A stretch of DNA of 64,000 nt from assembly GCA_973895155.1 (NCBI GenBank), contig OZ316898.1, positions 13,732,330 to 13,796,329 of the forward strand, read 5' to 3'. The notes beneath the pieces were generated by a model. The model was not told the origin of the DNA, searched no databases, and saw only the letters and a list, made by a program, of their open reading frames with translations. The position numbers and the translations under genes were made by a program. Source of the stretch: Marsupella aquatica (taxonomy: Eukaryota > Plantae > Marchantiophyta). Each line of letters starts with the position of its first letter. The stretch's first letter is position 1. Positions 291-23,707 of this stretch are shown here, one piece after another.

Positions 291-1290
291 AATAGAAAAC
301 ATGAAAGTTGGATTCACCATATATAGCAACTTCAAAGTTGAAAAACACTCCTTGAAAGAGGCTGTATCTAAAATGAATGCACTCAAACATACAAAGAAAT
401 AAATCATCAGTATCAAAAAATGCACTAAAAAATAAAGAGGAATAAATCACAGTTTTAAGTGTGTAAAAGTAATTCCCTGTAAAATACACTGAGAAAAATG
501 ACAATTTAAGTCAGATTTACGTGTTGCTAAAGAGCAAACTGTAGTCACCGTCCAACCGTCAATTCCACTTCTCAAAAGACATGATGGATCGCGTCCTCCC
601 GCAAAACCTTGAGCCCAAACACCTCTCTCTTTTGTGATGGATCATCAGGCACGCCTCAATTCAGGCGACTCCAGCCTCAGCCCGATCACCATCCCACCCA
701 GGTTGACGATAATAGTGAAGCTCGCTCTCCGCTGGCCGTGAAAACTGAGGTTGATCCACACAAAATGATGTGCTGCAGACTGATGTTGATCGTCCTCACG
801 ATTTGCGGAAATGGGTGAGTGGATGCATTTGTATTGGTGGGCCGGCTTTGGCGGATTTTAAAGGGTTGCTCATAGCCGTGCTTGACTCTGCTGCTGCTGC
901 TGCTGCTGTTGAGAAAGGACAAGACAATAATGGTAGCCAGGGCATTGTAATAATAGATCCGGTCACAACGACAGATGCTATGCGGACACCATGCAGGATT
1001 CAGAAGGGGAGAGGGGCACATCACACCACCATCATGAAAGTATCGCTTGGAATCGGGCTCGGATTCCCTGATTGGGTTTCAGGATTTGAAATTTTTGCAC
1101 GCAATGAGGTGATAGGCGTTTGACGTCATGTTCATGCTTGGATGGTTATGGAGAGACTATCTCTGTAGAGTAGCCACTACTGCCATTGAGGCTATCATTC
1201 TATCCAGAAGGAAATAAGGAAACAAAGACAAGCAAGCAAGGAAATAGAAAGTGTTTTAAAAGGATACGGAAAGCTCTGACTGACTGTGCC

Positions 1291-4200
1291 ATGTCAAGCT
1301 TTAGCAAAATGTTCACCAAGGCTCAGGATGTATCATTGGATCCGAAACGAGCAAAATCACTCCCAACACCCACAAAACAAGGGCAGGCTGGGTCCTCCAG
1401 TGACACACAGAGAAAGGTAGCCTGAATGTCCACCACCCTCATATGGGTTTTGTTTGAATGTGTCATGTGCACTGCCATGATCCAAAACTCGCTCCGACTA
1501 CGTCTGACTCTCGCCCAGGTGATTGATGCCCTACTTAGCTTTCAGTTCAGCAGAGTTCAGGGTATGCCCATGTCACCAAGCACCCACATCATAAGGGAAG
1601 GCAAACCAAAAGAATCTCAAGAGCAAGCCACTGACATTGGATGTCAACATTCCTGTCCAATTGTATTACTTGTGTCCCTTGTCATCAAATTCTTCCCAGC
1701 CTGCTCCCCCTCCCCCCCCCCCCAACCACACCATGACAACAACCTTCCCACCAATTTTCCCTACCAACAGGGTCTGAGGAGAATCCATCAATTAAATCCC
1801 ATTCTATCAATCATCATACATATTAAATTTCCTTGACGCCTGTATCCCTGCTTTGTTTCTTTGCCGTCTATAATTATCTCTTGTCAATGTGAGATTTTGG
1901 GAGTTTTTATTCTAGGGGGAAATGAAAAAGCAGCAAACAATAAGACATGATCCACTTACTATCACTCATTGATTTGGTCCACTCATGACTAATAATGCAT
2001 ACTTGTTTACAATAACCCTTTCATACAAGTTCTGAAGCTTTGGTAATGCAACACAGAAATGGATTGACAACCCAAAGTTCACAGAGTTCAAGCTCGGGGC
2101 AATTTTGGGCACTGGAAGCTTTGGGCGCGTACATTTTGCTCAGCACCAGCCTTCTGGTACAATTTGTGCGACCAAATCGTTGTCAAAGGCCTCTATTTTG
2201 AAAACGAGGCAGGCACGTAATCTCACGCTCAGTCTATTGAGGTTTCCTTTTCATTGAGCCATGTCTCGTCTAATCCTTCACTTTTATAAAACCTAACCTT
2301 GTACTCTTCTTACTAGATTTCATCTTGTCTAAATTTAGGAAAGGAATTGGGGTCCAAAGAATGCAATCATGACTGGGGAGGCATCAAACTCAAAAGCGAC
2401 TCTGCTCATAATTCACCTTGATTTGCTCCAATAATGGTCCAGCTGAGGATCTTAATTGTATGACTAATATTGGTAAGTGTCCTCAGATAGAGCACGTAAA
2501 GCAAGAAAAGGGCATCCTCAAGGACATCGATTTTCCCTTCATTGTGAATCTACTTGGCTACTGCCAAGATTCTACATGTGTCCACCTTGTGCTTGAGTAT
2601 GTATGTGGGTAAGTTTCAACCATTTAATTGTCTCTCAAATTTAGCCGTCACATCCTTAAAGATACAGGACAAAGCCACCATTGTCACAAAGGTCAGCTCA
2701 TTGTTATGAAATTTTAGCTAACCTAACTCATACATTATTCTTGATCTCCATTTACAATTTTCATGCCTTGCTTGATTGACAATGCTCAAGAATGAGCATG
2801 CAATTGACCCGCCATTTGAGTAGACTTTGAAACCGATGATTGATTGGAGGTGTTGAACAACTTATGACAGCTGCATTCTAAACACTTTTGTGTCATGATT
2901 ACATGTGTCACACAGAGGAGAATTCTTCACATATCTGCGCAGCACGGGACGCTTTGACGAGAACACAACTGTCAGACCATTTGCCTTTGTCATTGCCTTC
3001 ACTTGGATTTCTTGATAGTCTAGGAAATGAAATGTGCAGAAGCAAGCACTTGAATTTTACAACAGTACAATAATGGACTTGTTGCTTCTCTTTCTCACCC
3101 TATGCACATTCAGGCTTTAGTTCTAATATGAACAGTGGAACCACTTTTTGCAACATTCACATGTCATGACTAGCCTTGGAGACCACTAGATCACCACGTG
3201 TCTTCCTTGTCAATTTAAGATCAAGATCTCTAATCCTTCAGTTACAGCAAATATTGAGCAAGAATGATAGGTGGTGATAGAACTTTTGTACAATGCTCCA
3301 TTATATAAGCTTTACCTGAGCTGGCTCTCATTCAAGGCAGCCTGAATTTTTGAATCATAAAGATATTGTCTGGAAACTGGGAGTCTTTGAGATTGAAGCC
3401 CCCACCGTATTGGCTGGCAGAGGTTCTATGCAGCCCAAGTTCTCGTGTCGTTCGAGTACATTCACAACATGGATATTATCTACAGAGACTTGAAGGTAAC
3501 ACCAGTAACACCATGTCTCTTGAAACGATAGCCATCATAAGTGAACGGTTCTCCTGAGGTGGAGTAGACATAAGTTTGTGGTGTTATTGTACAAGTACAA
3601 GACATTAGATTTTGCCGATCTCTAATAGTCTGGCTATAAAACGTGTACTCAATTTTCTAAAACTAAAACCGTTACATGTTTGGGAATGCTCACGGAAATG
3701 CTTGAATGAAAATATCATCGCTATATTGGGGTCATGGGGACAGCCAGAGAATATGCTTCTTGATCAAGATGGTAACGTCAAGATTGCCGATTTTGGTTTT
3801 GCCAAGAAGATCGACCGAAGAACGTTCACTCTTTGTGGTAATTACAGCCCGTACTTTAGTTGGACTGTCGAGTCATGCTCTTCTGTATCTAGTCTCCACT
3901 CGGTATACCTCCTTCACACAGAAAGTTGCATATTTGGACAATGCGCTTCATCCAGGTAATTTGTATTACTATTTAAAAAATTAATGTTTTTATTTGACTA
4001 CATGTCTGGGGATGTAGCTCACATGGTAGAGCAATTGCTTTGCATGCAATAGGCACGAGGATCGATACCCCACACCTCCAATGTCCTTAAATTAGTCTAT
4101 TCTATCTATTTTTACCCCCCTCCCAAGAAATATGGTATAAGAAATTCCATCATTCTCCCATGTGTTTCACAATAGAGAGAAGAAAATGAAAATAGTAGAG

Positions 4201-6834
4201 TGGAGTTGGCTTGCACACTGTGACTGCTGCCATCGTAGATTTTGTGAGTCTATCGTTCCTGCTGACCTTCATGGCTTTGATGTGCAAACAGATAATCATG
4301 TACTTTGACTGTGCCATAGTCAGCAAGGAGTCCTGGTAGCGGAAATGGTGGACTCAGTTACCCTTTTTGCTAGCAATTTTTGTACGTGGAAGTGATCACT
4401 CATGATTTTTAATGTGTGGGCAATGCATAACATAGGTACTCCTGATTACTTGGCACCAGAACTCATCCTCAACAAGGGCCATGGGAAGCCAGTTGATTGG
4501 TAAGTTGATCAAAAATTGACTGGTTGAATGTGGGCAGTGTAGCTTCTAGCATGAGGAAAGTTGGGTCACTCTATTTTGAGTCTGTGACATCTGAAACATA
4601 GCTAAGGCTGTACTTGAGAGCATGAGTTTCTTACCTCACCAGTCACAATGCATCACACTAAGTGAGATCTTACAAAACACTAGCTTGTATACCAATAAAT
4701 AAGGGCCGCCCACATAGAGTAATGGGATGTCCTTATTAGTTAGAATAGGTCATCATGAATAATTGAAGTACTTGTTGTAAAGTATTCAAATATCTATTGT
4801 CTGTAGTGTTGATTGCTTCCTGTGTTCATTGCTTCCTTTATCGGTTTCCAAGACTATGCATGGCAAATGATTATGGTTCTAGTCAAGACTGATCAACTAC
4901 CAGCTAATTTGTTTGTGATCTTAATTCTTACCACAATGCACAAAATGATCAACCTGAAGAATTGAACGGATATAACTGTTGCTCTGTCACTTGTCCACAA
5001 AAGAAAAGATTTTAAGGACATTGCTGTCAAGTTTTCTTAGTTTTTGTGCACTACTTTAAATGAATGACCCAGCCTGAGTGAGCCAATGTTCTTCTGATCA
5101 GCAATCAAATTTGGACATATTCTTTTGTTACTTGATGTATAATCCACGTTTATGAATCTTGACTTTTGCAGGTGGGCATTTGGTGTCCTGGTCTTTGAGA
5201 TGCTAGCCGGCTATCCTCCCTTCTATGACGATGGTCAGTGAGTCAGGTTTCATTTGAATGGTGAATCTTGGAGTATCCTGTTACAGATTTAAGATCGAAT
5301 TGCTCTACTGCCCACATTGTTGCTAATAGTTTCCATCATCATTGTAGGCAAGTGAATTGATTTATAGGGGGGGGGGGGGGGGGGGGGGGCTGATTGTAAC
5401 TCGTTCCTTGCATTGAATTTCCGCTTAAACTTGGCATTGCAGATTCCAAATAGTAGTTATTTATCCAGGATTGTATTTTCAGATCCCGCTCAAACGTACA
5501 AGAAAATCTTGGCTGGGCGAGTGAACTTCCCTGGACACTTCTCTCGGAGGTAAAAAGCTTCATTGATGCAACAGAGAAGTTTTTGAATAATTAATTAGGG
5601 CTATTACCTGGTCCAGGTTATGAAATGGCTCAACGTGTTACAAAGTCAAGCAGAATTTATTCAACATAATGTAATTAAATCCTGAGATGAAACTTGGGCC
5701 TTCAATCACCCATACCTGTAATAGCCTTCCAATCAGTTGGCTGAGAATTGAACATGGACTATGGAATCAAGTTCCTTATAAGCAAGCCTAAAAGTCAGCG
5801 ATGCTAATACAATTCTAGGAACCCTTTGATCCAACTAGAATCCTGATCTACTTCTAATATATGGCTTGCATTCTGAATTTAGTTGCATTGGTTGTAAGAC
5901 ATTGTCTTAGTAATATCACAGCCCAGAAAAACACAGCAGTTCACATTGTACATGTTTACTATTGTTGACTTCTCTAGCGCAAAGGACTTGATCAGGCAGC
6001 TCTTGGTGGCCGACCTCACTAAACGGTGCGTCACTCTCCCTGATCAATATTATGTCGGAAAGACTAACAAATCTTCCTTTCTGTTCTTTAAAAAGAACTG
6101 AAAATTTGAACCTTCATAATTGACAGTGTCCAGTATATATGCATTCACCCATTATTCAATGTCTAGGGATAGTGAGCTAAAACAAAGAGATATTGACTTT
6201 GACAGATATACCTGAATAAATTGTGCTCGGCAATTATCGTACATGCATGGAAACTGCATATTAAACATAATCAGGCTCTGAAAAGCTATGGCGAAAGAAG
6301 CTTATAGTATATATCTCAATCTTAAGATGACTCTAAAATCGAGCCATTTGCCTAGATTAAATAAATAACGTCATTGTTAACTCAGCAAACTTCTGCTTGA
6401 GTCAGAATTTTTTACAACAAGTATATAGCATGGAACAAGCATCCCAAGAAGTAAATGGTTTGTGCAGGATTGGATGTCTGAAGGATGGAGTGAAAGATAT
6501 CAAAAATCATGCGTGGTTTTCTGGCACTGATTGGGACGCTGTAGTAAGAAAGAAGGATACACCTCCAATCCGGCCCAAAGTCTCGGTACGGTGTTACATC
6601 TCAACCGTTGAAAATGTATTCTAGTTCTGAATAATATGTGCTTGGCTAGCTTAAACTCGTGCAAGTTACCTCCCGGGAGAAGAGATGGGAGTACTAATTT
6701 TAAGTGTGGGTGCATGTCTGACTCTCCAGGGAGCGGATGATACATCTTGTTTTGACGACTACTCCAAGATGGAACCAATGAAGCACGAATTTGTGCTCTC
6801 TGCTAATGACCAGAAACAATTCGAGGACCTCTGA
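1291..6834 (+). CDS. cAMP-dependent protein kinase (PKA) catalytic subunit-like AGC kinase, 12 coding exons: 1291-1416 (tentative), 2057-2212, 2487-2608, 2916-2970, 3421-3495, 3744-3837, 4436-4499, 5172-5233, 5483-5549, 5978-6025, 6468-6585, 6730-6834
   Basis: Manual splicing gives a continuous kinase with consistent intron phases: [15 protein letters not shown]|[91 protein letters not shown], ending FEDL*. The first exon and start codon are less certain. Confidence 0.92.
4008..4080 (+). tRNA. tRNA-Ala(UGC), intronic, possibly a pseudogene
   Basis: GGGGATGTAGCTCACATGGTAGAGCAATTGCTTTGCATGCAATAGGCACGAGGATCGATACCCCACACCTCCA, 73 nt. It has the G3:U70 Ala identity pair, anticodon TGC at 4041-4043 and a perfect anticodon stem ATTGC/GCAAT. 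There is one A:C mismatch in the acceptor stem and two in the T stem. Confidence 0.8.
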
Positions 6835-7814
6835 GGTTGGGGAGCTACATTCGAACTCTATCTATCCGACCAGTTCATTCAGTTTCCAATCACCAATGGG
6901 GCTAGGAGGCCTGACAGAAATATTGGTAGCTGAAAACGCAAAGAGAATGAGAGAGAGATGTTAACATATCATGGTCGTTACCTTTTAATATTCTTTCCTT
7001 ATGATAGTCATTGGCCATTTCATTTAGTCTCCTCCTGGATTTGGATAGTCTACTGGCCTTAGAGCTTCCACCAACAAATTACAAAATTCTCACATCGCTT
7101 TACTAGTAGGCTCATTGGCGTACTGTAACATATGAGAGATTATTATTATCCTGTTCATCCAGTTCTCAGTGTTCCACTGGATATCCTAATCTCAACCCCA
7201 GAAACTTTGTTTTAGTTTTAAGAACTTCACTGTATCTTGTTGGTGGCGGTTTAGAAGCTAAGGTCTATTAAGACTACAACATTGTTTGATGGTATGCACA
7301 TGCACAAACCATGAAGATTGATGTAATTGTACCACCACAAAATTCATATTCATATTTATTTAGCTGTAACACACCTTAATCTTCAGCAAGTTTTCACATC
7401 CAAATTATCAGGTCAAGCTGAGTGTACGCACATTACATCCGATGGGCTTGTGCCAGAGTGGAGTGGAGTAACTGACATGAAAGTAGTTAAGATGGTCAAC
7501 TCGTCCAATTCCACTCAAATATCATAATGGCTCATTCATAATTGGTATGGTAATTTAGCTGCAAGCCGGAAGTGGATTGAAGAGTCGCCCGATATAGCAT
7601 GCTCATCCTGGAACATGCATGCTTGATTTTTTGTCTTGTAGTGATCTGAAAGTAAATCAAATATTAGAACATAACTAGAAGGAAAAAATAATGTAAGTAA
7701 AGTGTCTGCCAAGAAAAGCACAGTGACCAATGAAAACTACAGTCAAGTTTTATGACACAAGGATGCTACCATTTGTGCACTTAATTCAATGTGATTTATG
7801 AATGACCCTCATTT

Positions 7815-8110
7815 CAATAAAAACCATAAACTTACGAAAGAAAGACATGGGATTGAGGGGAACTTAAGACACAATGTGTTCATGTTATCCAGAATTATTT
7901 CTCTCACTCATGAAAATACTTTGTTCAAGTGGTGGAGCGGTTTCATCTCTAAGAGATCACAAACTTTAAAAGTTATAAGGGGGCTGCCAAAGTAAGTTTA
8001 AAATACTCTAGAATACCTAAAATTGAAGGGGTCTAAAAATTAATTAAAAATGGTTATGATGCAAAGGCTGCCCCTTGGTAAGGCACATTGAAACAAACAT
8101 ACATGACACA
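7815..8110. repeat. Diverged dispersed repeat (copy of 1-290)
   Basis: Same ordered blocks as 1-290. Confidence 0.6.
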
Positions 8111-8300
8111 AAAACTCTGAATGGTGGATTAATCTATTAAACCTACAGATCAGCTGGAATGTTCCATGAGAGCAAGAAGAGGACTAAAATGGCTTTCCAT
8201 TTACCTTGTCAAATGGTCAAATTCCAGAGCAAAGAGTGTCTGTCCATAGGTCTGCAGGGAGAAACAAAGGATAATAGGATTGTTGGGTGAGCTAAGGCTC

Positions 8301-8615
8301 AACTCGCATGTCATTGGTTTTTTCTTTTGTGGCTCTCAAAAGGTGTCATCATAACATTCATTTAGGCTGCCATGCCATAAGCCCCTCATTAGGCAAGCTT
8401 GACAGCAACTCTTGTTCTGACCCAAGGGCAAAGGCAGGTACTTTTTTAGCCCTTGCAGATCCCGACCTTTGGCTAGGGAATAAAACAAAAAAATAGACAC
8501 ACCACCTGTTGTCAATGGCCATTGTTGGCAAGTAGGGAAGCAGATTGTGACAGATTATGTTAGCTACTATTCCCAAAAGTATCAGCGTTGCATTCTTCAC
8601 ATGCAAGTTGGCTCT
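8301..8615. repeat. Repeat family A; inverted copy at 10634-10898
   Basis: cattcatttaggctgccatgccataagcccctc and cattcttcacatgcaagttggctct are reverse complements of gaggggcttatggcatggcagcctaaatgaatg and agagccaacttgcatctgaagaatg. Confidence 0.85.
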
Positions 8616-8806
8616 AAATGTCCCAGTAAGAACCTATGGTGACAAGTGAAATGGCAGCATATGAACCCAGCAAATCAAAATACAGAATGAAAATGATAAA
8701 CGGTTTGAATGATAAACCTGTAATAAGGATACACTTTTCACCCTGCCTGGCCATGACCTGCATATTAAACATTGATTTCCAGACAAGAAAACATTGGTTC
8801 CATTGA

Positions 8807-10616
8807 TTTTTTTTTTCAAAAGAAGGGGAACCACGAAAAACGGCAGCCCCGGGGACAAAGGCCACACAGGGACACAACACCGCGGCCCATGGCAAAACAA
8901 CGGCCAAGACACCACCACCACCAGGGGAATTAGTTCATGGACCCCTTGGCTAATAAAATCAGGGGGAAGAGTCAATCCGTCTCCATTTCTTATCTCCAGA
9001 AATCTCGTCCGTCCATCATAATGGCCAATCTATGGCTCAAAAGAAAGATCTCAAATAGATCTATGGATGGGTTCTGTCCGTTTTGCAAATGGGTTAATAT
9101 TTTTCAAATGAAAAATTAAACAAATCCAAGCCTTCCTAGCCGTTGATTTTGTTGATTTTACGATCTTTGCCGTCCATTTTGTAATGCCTCTAGAAATCTT
9201 ATTCATCCATGTTAGAAGGCAATCTAGGGTGCAAAAGAAAGGTCTCAATGCGATCTACGTCTGGGTATTTTTTGTTTTGAGAATGAGTAAATAGTTTTGA
9301 GTATAAAATTCGATAAACTTTCAAGATTCCAACCATTCCTCCTCCCCGATCCTGGGTTTCTATGTGCTCTTCCCAGCATTAATGGCCATACAATACGAGA
9401 GGTCCTTACATACCGAGAGTTGCGGTTTGACAAGAAAGTTATCAAGTTAGTTATTAGTCATTATTTATTATATGAAAAATACTTTTTCTAAATCTTTGAA
9501 TTTAAGTTTTAAAATTGGAAATGTAACTAAAACGGTTACATAGTGACAGTTTTAACCGTCTTGCTCTTTGCATTTCCAAAGTTTTTACTTTTTTTTACGG
9601 TACGGCGTCCCAAAATTTACACCCAAATTGACACAAACACGAATGAAAACTATAAGTTTGATTCTCAAAACCGACGAGTCTTGTTTGTTGCGGTTGTTGT
9701 TGACGTGGCACGCTGTGGTGCCAGGAATTTTGGAAGGGACCTCTAGTGGGGTCCGGAACAAAAAGCCAAAAGGACCTAGTTGGGCCACGGGGTCCTGTGA
9801 CTCCACCCGACGGTGTCAACATCCAAATACCAGGGTTCCTGTGTAGTTCTACATGAGCTGCCACCTTTCCTGTAGCTATTCGTAATCCTCTCTCTACTCA
9901 AAGTACTATTGTGTGTAGGGCTCCTGAATTGACTCCTCCACCAAAGCTTGTCATCAGTGTAGTCCTGGGGCTCACTTGCCTGCATAGGGTTGAGCCCCAA
10001 GAGAAGATCCTTGTTATGTGTCTATGTCTTCATCACTGGTGGAACAAAAGGAAACAGGAGTTTCAGTTCTCTCCCAGGGTTGAAGAACCACCTGCAATTG
10101 ATCAATGGTTGTTCTGAGCTGTCTAGTTTTCTTGGTGGACCGACATAGATCCAGCATGGCACACAAGTGTTTTTCCGTGAATCGAAGCACCACCCAAGTG
10201 GGGAGACGCCCAAGAAATTGCGAGTACATCGCAGCGTTCCGTTCTCTCCAAATGCTGTTGCACATTTCAGTCAGGAGAATAACTGGCCCGGGATTTCTCT
10301 TCTGTATACGGATAGCAGTGCAAATAGCTGCATACAAGGAGTTGTGGCAAGTGGGGAAAGCGGATAAACCGTGGGTCAACTGTTGAACATCTCTCCATCT
10401 ATCCTTCACTTAGCTGCAGCTGTAGAATAAATGTTCGGTATGCTCAAAACTGAGTTGGCAGCGGGTGCACAAACCATTGCAGACCTTCCAATGACTTCCC
10501 CGACCGTTGGTGAAGAAGCCGTGATTGAGTAAGCGCCATAGGAAAAACTCTATTATAGAGTTCTTGGAAACTGCATCAATGAAGGGTCCCATGAAGCATA
10601 TACCTCTATTTTCCAA
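8807..10616 (-). mobile_element. 5'-truncated L1-type LINE remnant (zf-RVT C-terminal region, 3' UTR, probable poly-A), interrupted by repeat B
   Basis: 10616-10014 (-) reads FFLWRLLNHGFFTN..CTRC....EHTEHLFYSCS*VKDRW...IWRERN, a zf-RVT pattern with one in-frame stop at 10410-10412. The T10 tract at 8807-8816 is the probable poly-A tail. No TSD was seen. Confidence 0.7.
8965..9215. repeat. Repeat family B; inverted copy at ~11010-11260
   Basis: tatctccagaaatctc, ggctcaaaag, tatttttcaaatgaaaaa and aagccttcct match the reverse complements gagatttctggagata, cttttgagcc, tttttcatttgaaaaata and aggaaggctt. Confidence 0.75.
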
Positions 10617-10633
10617 CTAGATTGCAGACAATA

Positions 10634-10898
10634 AGAGCCAACTTGCATCTGAAGAATGTGGCTCTTACAAAATTTGCTTCCCTACTTCTTGATGAGGCCA
10701 GAGTTGACAACAGGTGTAGTGGCTTTCTTGTTTTATTCCCCAGCCAAATATCAAGACCTCCAAGGGCTAGAAAGCTTCAGCCCTTTACCCTTGGGTCAGC
10801 ACAGGCCTGCGAAAGAGGGGCTTATGGCATGGCAGCCTAAATGAATGGCATCTTTCACTTTTGGGGCCACAAAAGAAAAGGCAGATCACATGCGAGTT
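10634..10898. repeat. Repeat family A, inverted copy of 8301-8615
   Basis: See 8301-8615. The ORF track shows the shared EGLMAWQPK* on opposite strands. Confidence 0.85.
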
Positions 10899-11009
10899 AG
10901 GCCTAGAGTACATGGAGTGAGCAATGACTTCACTTTACACTCCCCCACTCTGATTTAATTTTTGAAATGGAATACTCATTTTTGAAATGGAAAATACCAT
11001 GCCGTAGAC

Positions 11010-11260
11010 CAACAAGATTTTAGGAGTGGTACAAATCAGCGACAAATATTACAGAAGTGACAAATTCATTGGCAAGGAAGGCTTAGATATGGTTTATTTT
11101 TCATTTGAAAAATAATTGAACCAGTTTCAAAATGGAAAAAACCTCATCTGTTTTGAAAATGGAAAAAGCCTAATCTCCCTTTTGAGCCAGAGATAGCCAC
11201 TAATGTGGACCGATGAGATTTCTGGAGATAAAAGACAGACGGCTCAGATCTGTTCTTCTC
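11010..11260. repeat. Repeat family B, inverted copy of 8965-9215
   Basis: See 8965-9215. Confidence 0.75.
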
Positions 11261-11583
11261 CCGGGAACTCAAATTCTGAATTAGACCAATGAAATTGTAC
11301 AGTAAGTTTTTCCGGATTTTCTGATGAAACTGTTAAACAATTTGCTCACTTCTTTTACGTTTGTCCACTTGGACCCTCTTTTGTCTTTTGTACTCTATTT
11401 GGTACGTTTCTGTAAAAAGTTTGTATATTCCCCCGTTAAACAATTTCGTTCACTTGTTATTGAGAGGATCAGGATGTACATTCTGAGCCGTCGATTGCAC
11501 CTAACGGTGGACGAGAGATGAAGGTGCGAGCAGACATCCGATGGTTCAGGGGGGGCGCCCACTACGCGTCGCAAAGGTGAAGC

Positions 11584-11625
11584 CATACGAGACTGTTTCG
11601 TATGAGGACTCCGCGTAACGCGGAG
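11584..11625. promoter_or_regulatory. Two adjacent palindromes upstream of polyubiquitin 1; the second contains two CGCG boxes
   Basis: CATACGA-gactgtt-TCGTATG (11584-11604) and CTCCGCGT-a-ACGCGGAG (11609-11625). Confidence 0.4.
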
Positions 11626-11811
11626 CCACTTGTACCGTGATTTTGGTTCAGAGCTCCGACGCACAAGACGAGTCATTCTGTCTTCGTTCTTCGTCTTCTT
11701 TACGAGTTGGGCTTCCGGTGGGAGCTCTGAATTGAGGAGACCGCGGTGTGGTGTGGTGTGGTGTGGTGTGGTGGGGATCGTGTGCTGCGTAAATAATAAT
11801 TGGGTGGGTGA

Positions 11812-13263
<1,452 letters not shown>

Positions 13264-15421
13264 GGAGTGCAGGTCCACCATGTAGAGCCTAAAGGAGAAC
13301 TTCGGGTCATTATAGAGATTTGAAGATTGAAGGATTCATGTCTGAAGCGAGGCTCGTAGTCAGGACCTAGAGACTGTCTCCTCATACGTGCTCCACAAAG
13401 CTTTGTGGATACTTTCGACGGTTTCGTTGTACCACTATTCCCACCCATGTAAATATTCGGAAATAATCAGTTTGTTCATAGATACAGAGGACTGTCTCAC
13501 TATTGCATGATAAATTCGATTTGGTTTACTTCTAGTTCGTCACATTCCACCTCGTGCATGCTAAAATTATGGGCATAAATGAACCAAGTGGAGGCAGTTG
13601 GGTTGAGCATAGAAACTTGCAGTATTATTCTTTCATTCGTAACTGTCCGTGGGTCTTAAGGATGGAGGGATGAGAGTTGAAATTTTCTCAACTTTGAAGA
13701 TGTCATTTCCGTCTGAACCACCTCTTGTATGTAATTTTGAACATCAAACTGTGGGGGATCGTTAGCCAGAGAGATGTCCTTCAGTGTAGCTATGGTCATG
13801 TAAGCCTCAGGAGTATATGGTGTATTATTGCGTCAAAGTAACACCCTGTTTGCTTCCTTTTTTTTTGTTGGTCAAATTCGGGGACATCGACTGATCTTAG
13901 GTAGGAGCAGACTCAAACGTGACAACGGTCGCCACTGTGTATAGAATTGTCTTGAGTGCACAGTTACAGTGAGATGAGACCATCGCTCTTACAATCTTTT
14001 CTGTGGTCCGAATTACAAATTGAAACAGTCTGAGCCACTGTGATGTGTCGACACCAGTGTAAGAGTCAGAGTGCAACGTCTCTCTTTTACAATCGTCACT
14101 GGTCCCACTTACAAATCGTTAGCAAACTGAAGGGAAATGAACAGGAAGCTAAAGTCGAGAGTAAAGGTACGGTGGACTTTCACAAGAGAAACGTCTTAAA
14201 CTTCGAACAGTATACAGCAGTGAAGTAGTTCACGAACCTATCGTTTTCAAACTTGTAACATCACATCGTTATTGTGGTCTCATCAACCACAACTACTTTC
14301 GTCTTCCGGTACACTGGTACAGGAGTTCCTCGTGCTGACGTAAATCTCTGATGGGCTGGCAGGAGGCATTTGTACATCTTTCGTGCAGGTGAAGTTGGAG
14401 AGAGTGGGGATCCGTGAAAACCTGTTTACAATTCCAGATTTCGCAGATCTTGAAATCTCTTCAAACTAACACGTGATGGTGTTTTTCTTTCTTTGACTCA
14501 AAGACCCAGTGGCCAACACCTTTATGTCTTCACCTACACCTTAGCCAGAGACAATAAGTACTGCAGAATGGAACCAAGCCAGGAAGGTCATGTCTATTTT
14601 GGGGATTTTCATTCAGCAGGCCAATTGTAGGTTGTTTTGCCCAGAATGACTTGGAAGGACCTCAGCAAAACTACTGCCGGTATTGAATCTGAATGGCCTT
14701 GATCGCTACTTGAACGAGGGATCATCCACAAAAGTAGATCTCAAGCATGTGCCAAGAGTGCACAGCCTCAACTCCTCCGACTGAGGGGTAAGGTGATGGC
14801 ACGGTGGTCAATGTGCTCTTGTTGTAAGTCGCACCAGATGATCCATGTCCTTTGCCCCACGCCCATGCTTAACGAAGCAGTGCTGTAAAATTTGCCAGAT
14901 CAGGATGCAAGTTTAGAGAGGATGACAGGCACCAAATGAAGTTGGGTGTTCTTGAATTCCACATTTCCGATTGACACAAGAATTCTCCATGCACCCTGAG
15001 ATGAGCATTTTGAACCAAATTTGATCCCGCTCCCTCACGATTGTCTTTCAACCGATTTAAAGAAACTCCAGAGCAAAGATGCAGACAACCAGTCGGACAC
15101 ACTGGACATTGCCGATTGAGTTCGCTAAGTGGGTGCATTAATGTCCTCGAGACTTTTAAGGGTTACCACGAGGGTCTCAAGGTAATGCCAATATGAATTA
15201 CCCACTTATGATTGTATGCACAACTCTAGACAAAATTTTAGATACTTTCTGTGAATCTTAGAAAACAAATTGCAATGCATACCTTAGTAATATTCTTAGA
15301 CCTTAGTAATTAAAAACAAGCTGAATTCTACAGGGTTTTCATAGGTTTTTGCGATTTGCTGAAACGTGAAAACATTGAGCTTTTGTGCAGGTCCTGTGCG
15401 GGGCTACGGAAAATGTATAAG

Positions 15422-15568
15422 GTAATCACGGTCTTGTCGACCATTACCGGGGAGTAATAGGCACGACGCGGTTCTGACACAGGCACGACCGGCTGGAGCC
15501 GGGAGTGCCTGGGGAGGAACTGGGGAGGGCCGGTTCTCCCGGCAACGGACGAACAAGATCGTGATTAC
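15422..15568. mobile_element. 147-bp non-autonomous mini-element (or terminal hairpin module) with ~33-bp inverted ends related to the adjacent Crypton-like element
   Basis: Left end gtaatcacggtcttg-tcgaccattaccggggag versus reverse complement of right end gtaatcacgatcttgttcgtccgttgccggg-ag. Confidence 0.7.
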
Positions 15569-15819
15569 GTTACGTAATCAAGGGTAGGTCGTGCGGTTAC
15601 CGGTTGCTCTCGGTTAGACGACCGAGATTAAATCCATCAAACCTGGTCGCGATGGGGGTAAAGCGAGGCAACAGCGGATGGGTGCTCATACTATTGTTAG
15701 GGTAGGCTGCACTGTGAATGTCGATGCGCTGTGGAATGTTTTTGAGCGGGGATGGCGGCGAGTTGTTGGTGCAGATGGAGGCTAGTTGCTGCTGCAGGAA
15801 TGGAGGCCAGTTGCTGCGA

Positions 15820-16020
15820 GGAGCGGGGAATGGAGATGAGGCATTGTTTTGAAGTTTCTGTTGCTGTTATTGTGGCGTTGTGCAATGTCGATGGCTTGCA
15901 ATGTCACTGCGGGAATAGCCGATGTTCTTTGGAGCGGGGAATGGAGATCGTGACATTCTTTTTGAAATTTGTATTGCTGTTATTGTGGCGCTGTGCAATG
16001 TCGATGGCTTGCAATGTCGA
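15820..16020. repeat. ~111-bp tandem duplication inside the Crypton-like 5' region
   Basis: ggagcggggaatggagat...ttgctgttattgtggcg.tgtgcaatgtcgatggcttgcaatgtc occurs twice. Confidence 0.8.
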
Positions 16021-16052
16021 TGTGTTTGATGTGAATAACTGCTGGTGCGATA

Positions 16053-18136
16053 TTGGTTAAAATGACGATGTGTGTGGACAGTTTAGTTTCATTCTCGTCG
16101 ATTACTGAATCTGTGGAATCGGTGGTGCAGGGATACAGGAAGATGGAGGAGTTGGTTGACGATGGAGCTGCAACCGAGTGGACTGCTGGTGACATTGATT
16201 ACTGTTCCTTGGACGAGCTTCATGGCGAGCAATCGACTGAAGTTGATGAGATTGACTTACGCACTGTGTTTGATGAAATCTCTTGAGACTCTGTGGCTGT
16301 CGATGTCGTTTCTACTCTGTTCGAGAGTGAGTCTGTCCAGCAGTTAGAGGTAAGTGTGCCAGGGTTACGGGCGCTTCCCGACCCTATGCTAGCTTAGGCA
16401 GGTAGAGGCGAAGAGAAATCAGCTTCACACAACAACGATCGATGGGCAGCAAAATGAGCTGACAGTCTTCGAATGGGTCTTGGTTGGGACATGACGGTTC
16501 CTCTTGGGAGTTTGCCTTTGCAACAGCTTGATGAGCTGTTTAGTAATCTTTTTACAAGAGCTGTAAAAGTAGACGGTACTCCATATCCTTCAGCCACTCT
16601 CATGAACATGATGAATGGCTTTAATCGAATCTTGAGGCATGCAAGCGACATTAGATCATTGAGATGTGAGGGAAATCTGCTAGAGAAAGATTTTAATATC
16701 AATGCGCATCCAGCTTTTGCTAGAACTCGCATGGTCCTGAACGCTGCCATCAAGAAGAGTGCAAAGGATGGAGTAAACAAAAAAAGAAAGAAGGTATGCA
16801 GCTTGCTTTCGAAATAGTTTCTGTTTTCAGTGGAAGTTGTTGTTTGTGCATCTTTAACAGCCTTTCGAATGGTACAGGGTGAAGTCTTAACAGAGCAGAT
16901 GGAGACGGCAATCTTAGCAGACATTGACCATCAGCTGACCTATAGCCACGGATGTCAGAAGCGCTTGGCGTTCTTTTGTCTTGTCAGGTTGGGTTTGAGA
17001 GGAGGAGGGGAAATATGGAACTTGCATCGCAATGATCTGAAAACCTGTCTGGACAAAGCAGGCAGAGAGTATGTCATGTAAGTATCCTTTTGAATCACTA
17101 ACTTAACAAGTTTTTTCTTTCTGTGATCCCTGACTGCTCATATTATGTGGTTTTCGTGTTCAGGTTTGAAGAGAGGGAGAGCAAAAACAACTCGTACACA
17201 CTTCAGAAGTACCAAGAGGAGCAGTTTCGCAATGTCTTCCATAGTTACGATGAAGACTTCTTGATGACGGTGAAGCAGTACAAGCGGCATTTGCCACCTG
17301 AAGCAGAGTCCGAGAAGCCTGACTTGTTCATGCAGGCTGTCACAAATCCAGCAGGGATTGTTTGGTACAACAAATGTCACAAGGTTGGGAGAGATACAGC
17401 TGGTAAGTGGCTAAAAAATATGGCTCTACTAGTAGGATTGACACCTGAAGTATTCACCAATCGCAGTGGGAGAGCTACTCTCATCACCCGAATGGCTGCT
17501 CGTGGAGTTCCTGATGAAGTTGGTATGCTAATCAGTGGACACCATTCCACTGGGGGCTATTTGAGGTATGATCGAACATAGAGATTGAAGATGGAAGCAG
17601 CTACATTAGTGTCTAGCAATCCTGCTATGGATACGAGAAAGCCTTGTCACATGTATCAGAGAAATTTGTTGCAGAGGAGCTGGTCGGATCTTGTTCTGGT
17701 TTGAAGCTGCTTGTAAGCAGGGTGAGCGAGAACTCTAATCTGCCGATGGCCATTACGAATCTCTTGCAGGTAAGTCGATGCAGTACTTTCTGGTTTCTTG
17801 TGACTTGTTTACTGTAATCTCATTTTACTTATTCCTGCTATGAATTGGCAGGTCCGAGAGGAACAACATATGGAGGAGAAAGGTCCTACAAATAGTTCGG
17901 ATGGTTCAAACAGCAAGAGGTCGAGATGGGAGAGAAATTATGACGACTTTGACTGGGAGAATGCAATTCTGACCAAGGATCCAGAGCTGTTTAAGAGAAT
18001 GTCATCGCTACCGAAGTCACCACGTTCAGTAGGAAGTAATATGTCAGGGAATGCTTTCCATAATTGTAGTGTGACCATCAAGTTTGTTCATCCGAACAAT
18101 GAGGAAGACAAGGAGAATAGTGTAGGTCCAAGCTAA
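16053..18136 (+). pseudogene. Tyrosine recombinase (Crypton / DUF3504-like), spliced and disrupted
   Basis: Introns at 16794-16877, 17078-17163 and 17770-17851 (all GT-AG), possibly also 16350-16400. Motifs: DGTPYPSATL, AFARTRMVL, GLRGG (R), ERESKNN (K), VWY..HKVG, TNRSGR, SGHHS and YLRY (Tyr at His+9), with C-terminal FHNCSVTI. In-frame stops at 16284, 16395, 16455 and 17579, and an apparent 1-nt deletion near 17631. Confidence 0.88.
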
Positions 18137-18638
18137 TGGTGTAGATAGTGATAAGTCTCCATTGTTGAGACAGAGTTCTCATGTAGTCAGGCTAGTTATA
18201 CAATTGCTTATATAGAATTATCCGGTAAGTGTTCTACTGATTATACATTTATCATGAACCTGAAGTATTCTTTTGTCACGTCATTTGGATTGATCAGTAT
18301 TTTTGTCACCTTTCAATAAAACAGAATGATTTTTGTACATGAAACTGTTTGAGTCTTTTGTGACCAAATTGTGTATACACTTTCCGTCTGGATTGTCACA
18401 AGAAATCACTATCAGCCATGACACAGAAATAAAACCTGCCAAGAAACACAAGCCGAGTGTCGCCCCCACTGGAAACCAGAACAGACGATGCTCCTATTGA
18501 GAAAACAGAAAAGAAGAAAAAGGATTGGAATAGCCATGATCAAGAGTAAACTGGCAACTGAGAAATGTATGTTCTCCGTTGAAAAATATGCCTTGTCCAT
18601 CCACTCCTTATCCCTTTTCCATCCACTCCTTATAGGAC

Positions 18639-18701
18639 TCCGTAAGGGCATTATGAATTTCCGTCAAAGCATTACAGGGTTCCGTAAAGGAATTATGGAT
18701 T
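18639..18701. repeat. Three 21-bp subterminal tandem repeats near the right end of the Crypton-like element
   Basis: tccgtaagggcattatgaatt / tccgtcaaagcattacagggt / tccgtaaaggaattatggatt at 18639, 18660 and 18681. Confidence 0.7.
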
Positions 18702-20133
18702 TTTGTTGTGTCAGGATGGAATATTATGGTAATGGGCATAATGGACGGAAAGTTTCACCCAACGGTAACCGCACCACCAACCCGTGATTACGAGATTGCA
18801 AGTGTACTGCAGAATTGATCATGATTGTGATAAGTCCAAATTGAGTGGCCACCATGCTGATGTCAGTCACATTTGGAGGTCAGGAGCTTGCACTTCATTA
18901 GGGAGTCTCAAAGCCAGGCCATGGCTGAAAGTTACCAGTTTATGGTCCATCCTGTAACTCTAGTTATAGGACCCATTTAAGGATTTTCAAAAATGGGGGG
19001 AAGTAGCATTGACAGTCCCATAATGCATGGCTTTACACCCCGGCAACTTTCCATCGCTTCTTTAGAATGATGCGGGGTACATTATCTAGAGTGGACCTTA
19101 TCTCCCGGTGTCTGTCATCATGACCTTCTTTTAGACTGAGGGAGTCTGACGTGCTCTAGAGGGCTCACACATTAATTTCACAATTCTTTGTAGAGTGAGA
19201 CTGTTGGGTTTAGGGCATTTGATCAAATTCCCTTGCTTAACCCTCCCATGCAGCTCACCTTAAATCTCTACCAGGCTCTTCAGCTTGACGTCAGAGAGGT
19301 TTCAGGTATTTTTGTTCCTAGGTGCTTTGGTGGACTTTTGTCCGGGTCCCCTGGGCCTTTTGGTTTCTTTTGTTGCATTCCCTTGATTCAGTCATTTGCC
19401 TGTGGGATAATTTTTTCAGGTTGGGTGCCTTCAGTTTTTTGCAGTTTAATATTATTTTTATGGCGTCACCTTAGACTAATGACATATACTGTTTCTCCGT
19501 CATCCTTAGACACCATCCCAAATGCAGCAGCCACTAGTGCCTGGAAACACCGCGCAACAATGCAAATGTCCACTGCTTTTTGCGCAGCATTTGCAAATTT
19601 TTGTAGTGAGTGACAGGGTAGAACAAACTTATTGAAGGGGCACACCTGGTTGGTTCTAAACATCATAGTTTCGCTCTTTTTCAAGTATTTTGCGATTGGA
19701 GGAAAAAAATTTGAAAACAACCTTGCTTCATATTTGGTATAACTTCTAATGTGTTCTTTGCATCATTCCTGAAAAAAACTCATTTGCATAAAGAGTGGAC
19801 ATGTATGATCGTCAACAAAACTTGCTTAGTTTTGAAAATGCATCCATTTTTGGGAGTGAAGGTGGCGGGAGGAGGGCTATGAGATGGAACCCAGAGAGGT
19901 ATGGGTTGGAGACTAGAGGGCTATGGGATGAAGGGGGGAGGTGGGAGAAACTATGCGCTAGAGACCAGAGGGCTATGGGGTGGAAGCCAAAAAGCTATGG
20001 GATAGAGGCCGGAGAGACCATCCTAGACAAGCCCATCATGCCTAGAGCTGAGAACTAGACAGCAAAAAGACAGCAGTAGTGTGGAGAGGACCCCTATTGT
20101 AAGACTCAAGCTGCTCCAAAAACATTGGAAGCT

Positions 20134-20292
20134 GTGTGGATAGTAAGTGAAATTTTCTGAAGCACAAAGTGTGGATAGTGAGTGAAATTTTCTGAAGCAC
20201 AAAGTGTGGCTAGTGAGTGAAATTTTTAGAAGCACAAGTGTGGATAGTGAGTGAAACTTTCTGAAGGACTAAGTGTGGATAGTGAGTAAAAC
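20134..20292. repeat. 35-bp minisatellite, ~4.5 copies plus degenerate copies downstream
   Basis: Unit gtgtggatagtgagtgaaattttctgaagcacaaa. Confidence 0.9.
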
Positions 20293-20444
20293 TAGAGGGC
20301 GATGTCAACGTTAGTTGCTCAAAAACTTTTGGGAGCACCAAGTGTAGACAGTGATTGCAATCTAAAGTAGCACCAAGTGTGGCTGGCAAGTTAAATTCAT
20401 AGATAGCTCAATTCTTCATCAACACTAAAAAATATTGGATTGGT

Positions 20445-21609: not shown

Positions 21610-22977
<1,368 letters not shown>

Positions 22978-23404: not shown

Positions 23405-23611
23405 CCTCTCTATGGTCAGTCAGATATTGAGGGCCTCAATAAGCTCAAAGGCAATAGGGCGTGTCAAAGCAGGCCTCTCTATGGTAGTCAGATATTGAGG
23501 GCCTCAATAAGCTCAAAGGCAATAGGGCGTGTCAAAGCAGGCCTCTCTATGGTAGTCAGATATTGAGGACCTCAATAAGTGCAAAGGCAATAGGGCCTGT
23601 CAAAGCAGGCC
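23405..23611. repeat. 68-bp tandem repeat x3 with an internal palindrome
   Basis: Unit cctctctatggtagtcagaTATTGAGGgCCTCAATAagctcaaaggcaatagggcgtgtcaaagcagg at 23405, 23474 and 23542. Confidence 0.92.
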
Positions 23612-23707
23612 TGAACTGTTACAAATCAGGACAAAAATACATAGAAGTAAGACTATGCTTACAGGAGAATTTTGCCAAAAATACACAGAAGTAAAACTAT
23701 ACTTAAG

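Follow-up and report, generated by a model that had tools for sequence, protein, structure and literature searches.

Crypton DNA transposons were reportedly introduced by Goodwin in 2003. Their mobility is known by analogy only, and their ends usually cannot be defined. Short terminal direct repeats of 4–6 bp serve as their crossover substrate. Cryptons have been described without terminal inverted repeats (TIRs; PMC3212892, PMC13465315) or long repeats, and animal Cryptons without any terminal repeats; in the model proposed for them, a circle recombines through a short shared segment (PMC3212892). In a 2026 study of Glomhopper, the boundaries could not be found (PMC13465315).

We analyzed a 64-kb stretch of the genome of the liverwort Marsupella aquatica, hereafter the window, which holds an element comparable with these systems. 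Like Cryptons of the DUF3504 type (CryptonA), the element has a tyrosine recombinase as its only recognisable enzyme and no reverse transcriptase. Weak matches of its relatives to DUF3504 and Phage_integrase, as well as the match of the structural model of one relative (P0018) to the Crypton-derived protein QRICH1, are possible further points of likeness, and so are the short, imperfect direct repeats at the boundaries, which suggest crossover in a 5–7-nt segment. Unlike Cryptons as described, the liverwort and moss elements possess TIRs of 26–37 nt and a conserved hairpin module; they occur in liverworts and a moss, ferns being represented by protein relatives, and the histidine of the HxxR motif is lysine or arginine throughout the recombinase family.

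The whole mobile unit occupies positions 15415–18792 on the plus strand of the window; its limits were set by empty paralogous sites and by the extent shared among relatives, and 15416–18792 or 15415–18791 are equally possible, as a single G is ambiguous between the ends. It is a composite of a terminal spacer, a hairpin module and a TIR-bounded recombinase part, arranged in the order GTATAAG, A1–hairpin–B1, 5 nt, A2–recombinase gene–B2, where the B arms are inverted copies of the A arms. The left terminal spacer GTATAAG (15415–15421, plus strand) was delimited by the alignment of relatives and by the left boundaries of the L042 family and of loci L003 and L046. The hairpin module (15422–15568, 147 bp, unstranded), an imperfect palindrome over its whole length, was recognized by repeat search, folding and self-complementarity; on direct reading, it begins with GTAATCACG... 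at 15422 and finishes with ...CGTGATTAC at 15568.

Four copies of the end motif were located by a motif scan: A1 (15422–15449, plus strand), the outer left copy; B1 (15540–15568, minus strand), the inverted copy which closes the hairpin module and has the same final bases, TTAC(G), as the element at its right end; A2 (15573–15602, plus strand), the left TIR of the gene-bearing part, 30 nt long and 90% complementary to 18763–18792; and B2 (18763–18792, minus strand), the right TIR, also found by the repeat search, the last bases of which, TTACG (18788–18792), are the likely crossover segment. A GTAAYC-type motif begins all four arms. The first-pass annotation had reported a bipartite motif at all four ends, and this was borne out: GTAATCAMG-N11–16-TTRCCG has exactly four matches in the 64 kb (15422+, 15568−, 15574+ and 18791−) and none in 100 dinucleotide-preserving shuffles. 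Its suggestion that the motif arms are the recognition sequence of the recombinase is, judging from the fourfold repetition, very likely correct, the arms being putative binding sites of the tyrosine recombinase with a predicted Cre fold that the element encodes. The perfect palindrome with 9-bp arms noted at the joint of the two parts is also present, as the 19-nt junction TGATTACGT-t-ACGTAATCA at 15562–15580 (read directly from the sequence, unstranded, 9-nt arms around T15571), which consists of B1, 5 nt and A2. It has the form of a right-end/left-end joint, as had been stated, and needs no separate explanation because two inverted copies of the end motif sit 5 nt apart.

The multi-exon, decayed tyrosine-recombinase gene (16473–18136, plus strand) was located by tblastn with relatives P0014, P0009 and P0001 and by the family alignment. 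Its likely exons lie at approximately 16473–16793, 16878–17077 and 17164–17577 or somewhat beyond, with a C-terminal part reaching 18136, and they are the only conserved reading frames in 15573–18792; no reverse transcriptase, RNase H or DDE transposase was found in the element. An in-frame TAG (17578–17580) stands right after ...RYDRT, where the relatives read on, and a frameshift occurs near 17630. Judged from these reading frames, the recombinase gene of the window copy is broken and the copy is dead.

The exons were searched individually, and no joined protein was used. With the catalytic exon (17165–17577), HMMER retrieved 136 relatives, those named being from Calypogeia fissa, Ceratodon purpureus and the ferns Adiantum capillus-veneris and A. 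nelumboides (the ferns as proteins only). The family alignment contains the blocks RGG.E, SKN(Y/N), (K/R)SGR, GH and Y.RYD, corresponding to an R / K / SGR / GH / Y pattern. Relatives P0013 and P0020 scored 24 and 18.5 bits, respectively, to the Pfam family DUF3504 (PF12012), under its cut-off of 29.7 bits, and weak, sub-threshold matches to Phage_integrase were also obtained with relatives; the single exons of the window gave no meaningful match in Pfam, and a sequence-profile search of the PDB with the family alignment gave none. The AlphaFold model of P0018, with pLDDT above 80 over most of residues 70–250, matched Cre with an E of 1e-6 across about 350 columns; further matches were QRICH1, Tn1549 Int, XerH and IntI. 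The family alignment, the Pfam hints and the predicted Cre-like fold together point to a Crypton-like tyrosine-recombinase element. An apparently young member of the family, P0143, is intronless, 843 aa long and present in multiple copies; it could be a candidate for expression. At 31 metagenome protein loci, only the last 35 residues matched, with about 50% identity, and several of these loci were situated on soil-type contigs of up to 132 kb; they were taken as bacterial integrases and rejected.

Two paralogous empty sites were found in M. aquatica, on contigs from two runs. They read ...AAAT-G-AGATTGC... and contain neither the hairpin module nor the large, gene-bearing part; realigned against these contigs, the window reads ...AAAT-G-TATAAG...GATTAC-G-AGATTGC at the same site, with a flanking direct repeat of 1 nt. 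The empty sites are diverged paralogues of the surrounding repeat, not alleles. Since both parts are missing from them together, we regard 15415–18792 as a single insertion. Its true outer left boundary is 15415/15416, because GTATAAG precedes the motif, i.e., 7 nt to the left of 15422. The 147-bp unit with inverted ends of its own, as first annotated (15422–15568), is thus real, but its outer boundary has to be moved and its palindrome extends over the whole length.

Boundaries in other copies agree with this extent. Left flanks of three different kinds occur among members of the L042 family; each of them runs up to the same base, abutting |GTATTGGG and stopping before GTATTGGGTAAC, and right flanks of three kinds start after ...GATTACG|; the metagenome contigs of this family are possibly chimeric across the repeat, and the pairing of left and right flanks is not always secure. 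Loci L003 and L046 of C. fissa align solely from GTATAGGATAACC (GTATAGG) to ...AAAGTTACGT (GTTACGT), with no similarity outside. We conclude that the composite is what moves, because loci share sequence out to the outer end of the hairpin and neither part is present at the empty sites. The 147-nt unit is probably a built-in, inherited and functional left-end module of one Crypton-like mobile unit and not a second element.

The relatives' loci comprised all those with obtainable DNA and were oriented with the gene on the plus strand; about 130 kb of related loci and the 64 kb of the M. aquatica genome were searched. Every relative with a readable left end has a hairpin unit of 125–160 nt, followed by 3–5 nt and then by the TIR-bounded gene part, and at every such locus the hairpin unit lies 5′ of the recombinase gene. 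The 3–5 nt of the relatives' junctions terminate in AC, and GTAAT follows. In C. fissa, the hairpin of L003 lies at 9480–9633 and the TIRs of its gene part at 9633–9667 and 13823–13857; L046, on another chromosome piece, has its hairpin at 9457–9610 and its gene part at 9608–13025; in L004, a member of a more distant family, the hairpin spans 9533–9683, with the start of the gene some 320 nt further downstream. The search for a right end of the L004 copy was unsuccessful, and this copy may be truncated. In the moss Ceratodon purpureus (L005), the hairpin (6467–6598) has 35-nt arms (97%), and the gene part spans 6602–12004. Loci L037–L045, plant contigs in JGI metagenomes, encode an identical intronless 843-aa protein; in L042, the hairpin (872–995) has 60-nt arms and a 4-nt loop, and the gene part extends from 996 to 4511. 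The TIRs measure 30 nt in the window, 35–37 nt in L003 and L046, 26 nt in L005 and about 19–30 nt in L042. A second called reading frame of 132 aa lies between the left TIR and the recombinase gene of the young intronless family (L042:1040–1438, also L037:78–476 and L040:1239–1637); no Pfam family is on record for it.

Layout and 5′ side are kept across five diverged lineages, from liverworts to a moss, despite sequence change. The hairpin units are mostly unalignable between lineages, and only those of the window and L003 share 72–78% identity, in the right half of the unit. The large part of the window has DNA similarity to L003 and none to L004, and the same holds for its hairpin unit. Since both parts match L003 and neither matches L004, they diverge in step.

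The left termini read GTATAAGG in the window, GTATAGG in L003 and L046, GTATATGG in L004, GTATTGGG in L042 and GAATTAGG in L005, and the left spacer is conserved as GTAT(A/T)NG among relatives. The possibility that GTATAAG is a Tn916-like "coupling sequence" was rejected, as different families retain GTAT. Every right end reads ...TTACG(T). Left flanks resemble this right end to different degrees: GGTTACG agrees at 7/7 positions in L005 and TTACGT at 6/6 in L003, the flanks of the L042 family (TGAC or TTAT) agree at 3/4, and those of the window (AAAT) and of L046 at 1/4 each. When the left-flank bases that precede the terminal G are compared with TTAC over eight sites, 21 of the 32 positions agree versus about 8 expected (manual count). 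From these sequences, crossover during integration seems to take place at the right-end TTACG, and the similarity of the flanks to TTACG fits the Crypton model of a circle recombining via a short shared segment (PMC3212892).

The element would accordingly leave its site as a circle in which the right end is joined to the left end, giving ...GATTACG+TATAAGG.... The predicted circle junction of the window copy is GAT-TACGTA-TAAGG, and TACGTA, which would also arise in L003 and L042, forms a small palindrome between inverted arms; among the reads, no such junction was seen. Integration would proceed by crossover in TTACG with loosely similar targets (TTAYG). In L005, a 13-nt direct repeat, GATCATGTGACAG, occurs at 6443–6456 and 12035–12048, just left of the element and 30 nt past its right end; it could be a local target duplication, or else the element could extend further to the right.

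At L003, an unrelated 428-bp TIR element (9051–9478) finishes with ...GGAGATTACGT (TTACGT), and the composite abuts that end exactly; the element is absent from the sister copy L046. The 428-bp element has the ends ACATAATCCCC... and ...GGAGATTACGT, with ACGTAAT-type termini, and contains neither a hairpin module nor a gene; it may be a true non-autonomous relative, and would then be part of the sole tandem accretion seen. End-to-end accretion does occur, since here the composite abuts the end of a TIR element, once. Head-to-tail accretion would likewise be expected, because no target could match TTACG better than the right end of the element itself. The pair of hairpin unit and large part may first have arisen by such end-targeted accretion and is now inherited as one piece. 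Site-specific integration at an element end, as proposed in the first-pass annotation, has its example in L003; a separate arrival of the two parts at the window locus is not supported.

The same observations could be read to mean that only A2...B2 is mobile: excision between the TTACG of B1 and that of B2 would leave the hairpin behind, and pairs would be re-formed because hairpin ends are preferred targets. B1 and B2 share CGTGATTACG exactly versus only AAATG at the outer left boundary, the internal junction has the form expected of a circle of the large part, and the accretion in L003 shows that such ends serve as targets. However, this reading predicts solo hairpins and hairpin-less large parts at TTAYG, and neither was seen at the nine left ends read or inferred. 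Moreover, the three different flanks of the L042 family all abut the outer end of the hairpin, and the paralogous empty sites lack the hairpin too. We consider mobility of A2...B2 alone unlikely.

The original proposal was that the 147-bp unit is an independent non-autonomous element at whose end the large autonomous one integrated, or vice versa, and that the two build cassette-like tandem arrays. The unit does begin and end like a complete element, with the same TTACG as the large part, and the end-targeted integration seen in L003 may be the origin of the composite. Against this stand the retention of the pair as a unit by five lineages, with side and spacing unchanged, the divergence of both parts in step and the empty sites without either. 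The module was attached to the large part throughout: in this copy, in at least one other copy in the genome, in one copy in run X5, in L003, L046, L004 and L005 and in the L042 family (three left flanks). A variant contig (15560T, 15569A and 15573T, all CpG-type transitions) crosses the junction of hairpin unit and large part in runs X1, X3 and X4, and a diverged contig of run X5 crosses it with at least 108 nt on each side, while X5 has no depth over the left flank. No solo unit, no array of units and no large part without the unit were found in the 64-kb window or the fetched loci, and a metagenome scan for the conserved core of the unit (20 specified bases) returned 0 matches.

Sequencing depth, as summed over contigs and to be taken as a rough guide, was 149, 216, 427 and 7.9 in four runs for 15379–15575 and 326, 827, 1090 and 5.3 in the same runs for the recombinase exon (17349–17545). 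We read this as a depth of the hairpin unit no higher than that of the recombinase exons, and the unit is thus not amplified in the manner of a MITE; in run X3, the summed depth within the module was 300 versus 100 at the junction, which leaves room for extra module copies. An autonomous/non-autonomous pair is contradicted by the constant attachment of the unit, the empty sites, the lack of solo units and the depth, and the count of solo 147-bp units, by which that proposal was to be judged, is zero in the window and the fetched loci. A tandem-array cassette system finds no support either, as no array of more than one unit was seen and the recombinase gene of the window is broken. Two independent elements are, in our estimate, quite improbable at this locus.

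The hairpin module is self-complementary across its whole length (72% over 155 nt), and as single-stranded DNA it is predicted to fold into one long hairpin of −44.6 kcal/mol (z = −7.6). The repeat search gave its arms as 15418–15437 and 15553–15572 (20 nt, 90%). A structure of 33-nt inverted ends around unrelated filler was rejected, as the unit is palindromic over its full length. According to fold predictions, five modules each form a single long hairpin with z from −5.5 to −16.9; the values for the relatives (L003, L046, L004, L005 and L042) include −5.5, −8.8, −14.1 and −16.9.

A hairpin of this kind could instead be a transcribed or regulatory feature, such as a promoter, a leader or a small-RNA hairpin by which the element would be tuned or silenced, and not part of the recombination site. 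Its constant position 5′ of the recombinase gene would suit such a role, long hairpins are good Dicer substrates, and Rfam returned matches to miRNA precursors. Those matches were all sub-threshold, with scores far under the gathering values (26 vs. 82 bits and 25 vs. 196 bits), and any long hairpin gives such weak matches to miRNA precursors. Furthermore, the hairpin lies outside the left TIR of the gene part, has the TIRs' terminal motif in its arms and marks the insertion boundary with its outer end at all loci. We regard a purely regulatory hairpin as very improbable. Chance adjacency of two unrelated TIR elements, in favor of which there is nothing beyond the adjacency itself, can be dismissed in view of four 15-base bipartite motifs versus 0 expected and the same layout in five lineages.

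Copies of the L042 family revealed inversion of the hairpin tip. L043 differs from L040 at 12 positions over 4.5 kb (99.7% identity) and from L042 at 14 positions over 3.6 kb (99.6% identity), with 10 of these 14 falling within the hairpin unit. In the comparison of L043:394–526 with L042:869–1000 and L040:1068–1199, copies which are otherwise 99.6–99.9% identical, inverting the central segment leaves 1 difference; the breakpoints may be anywhere in 24–49 and 82–107 of L042:869–1000. Mismatches of the outer stem are common to all copies at different loci and are not flipped. The idea that every transposition event regenerates the palindrome from a single arm was rejected, as these stem mismatches are common to copies at different loci. 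The inversion of the tip implies that the two hairpin arms interact in vivo, either by recombination between the arms or in a folded form. L040 and L043 share the element and 888 nt of the right flank, and on the left their flanks diverge precisely where the module's outer end lies; this reflects either a chimeric metagenome assembly across the repeat or a rearrangement breakpoint at the left terminus.

For the inherited module of the composite, we propose a role in recombination. Circularization would arrange the parts as B2–core–A1–hairpin–B1–5 nt–A2, amounting to a compound recombination site in which the hairpin module supplies two further binding arms beside the core. A tyrosine-recombinase synapse needs four protomers, and a four-way junction is what such enzymes naturally act on. 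The composite would thus offer four arms for four recombinase protomers. Recruitment at an unaided attB is solved in phage lambda by the arm sites of attP. Similarly, a loosely chosen target could not be counted on to recruit two protomers, and the element would carry the full set itself, as the arm sites of lambda attP serve attB. A cruciform in the supercoiled circle or a hairpin in single-stranded DNA would gather the four arms around the four-way junction. We propose folding because the palindromy extends beyond the arms, over the whole length, in every lineage. By analogy with these systems, the four-protomer or cruciform role of the module is conceivable, though somewhat doubtful, and it is one of several functions the data allow.

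Several described systems share single features with this arrangement. The tyrosine-recombinase retroelements with split direct repeats (Ngaro, VIPER and PAT, of the order A1...B1-A2-B2) and DIRS1, with its internal complementary region, resemble it in that a full and a miniature unit stand in tandem and the internal B/A joint copies the circle joint. Unlike Ngaro, VIPER and PAT, the element has no reverse transcriptase, its short unit is 5′, and its A and B arms are inverted copies which give a hairpin. Integron attC and CTX-phi attP(+) are likewise imperfect palindromes of about 60–150 nt in which recombinase-type arms form the stem base and mismatches are passed on, not erased; however, they are bacterial, and single-strand recombination has been shown there, whereas the liverwort element is known from its sequence and no cassette array was seen.

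By analogy, the extra sites beside the core, which would help to capture a target with poor recombinase binding, may be likened to the arm-type sites of lambda attP, and the low crossover homology of the flanks, 1–3 nt of 5 at most sites, to the tolerance of Tn916/Tn1549-type integrases for dissimilar crossover regions; unlike in lambda attP, the extra sites repeat the core arms themselves, and accessory proteins are not known. In the flip/flop hairpins of parvoviruses (AAV ITRs), copies that agree elsewhere may carry the tip of the terminal palindrome in either orientation, as in the L042 family. Unlike AAV ITRs, the element is an integrated eukaryotic transposon with a tyrosine recombinase in place of an HUH nickase, and the inversion could equally come from inter-arm recombination. 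No description of a hairpin end layout for Crypton-class elements was found in the searchable literature, i.e., outside subscription journals and Repbase.

It is possible, but as yet a tentative suggestion, that land plants (liverworts, mosses and probably ferns) carry a distinct Crypton-like class with a compound palindromic site, in which four arms surround a folding hairpin or cruciform whose tip flips. If true, this would be a eukaryotic counterpart of the folded-DNA substrates of integrons and CTX-phi, and no Crypton lineage before it would have had its ends and core site defined. The conserved hairpin and the existence of flip/flop isomers suggest that folded DNA takes part in a tyrosine-recombinase reaction of eukaryotes, for which we found no description in that literature. 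The family also widens the range of Crypton-type elements to bryophytes and, by protein relatives only, to ferns. Its ends are exact, TTACG is the likely crossover segment, the circle junction can be predicted, and four candidate arms and an intact P0143 are at hand; with these, the mechanism of Cryptons becomes directly testable.

Within the window element, the region between the left TIR and the gene contains a tandem repeat of a 23-nt unit (15750–15817, 2.8 copies) and a pair of 59-nt repeats 113 nt apart (15847–16018). This region shows the greatest length variation among copies, with insertions at 16036 and 16264 in other copies. Differences between copies in 15415–18792 (X1, X3, X4 and X5) are mostly C>T and G>A (in X1, 164 and 179 of 923, respectively), a pattern expected from deamination of methylated cytosines in silenced repeats.

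The DNA at 14000–15414 and 18793–19400 is repeated in the genome; several diverged contigs cover it, with many loose ends at 18939, 19013, 19131 and 19287. As two paralogues bridge the insertion site and the flanks are repeated, the element sits inside an older repeat. Further downstream, tandem arrays are situated at 20115–20403 (35-nt unit, six copies), 21617–22828 (228-nt unit, five copies with 65–100% identity) and 23418–23621 (68-nt unit, three copies, two of them identical).
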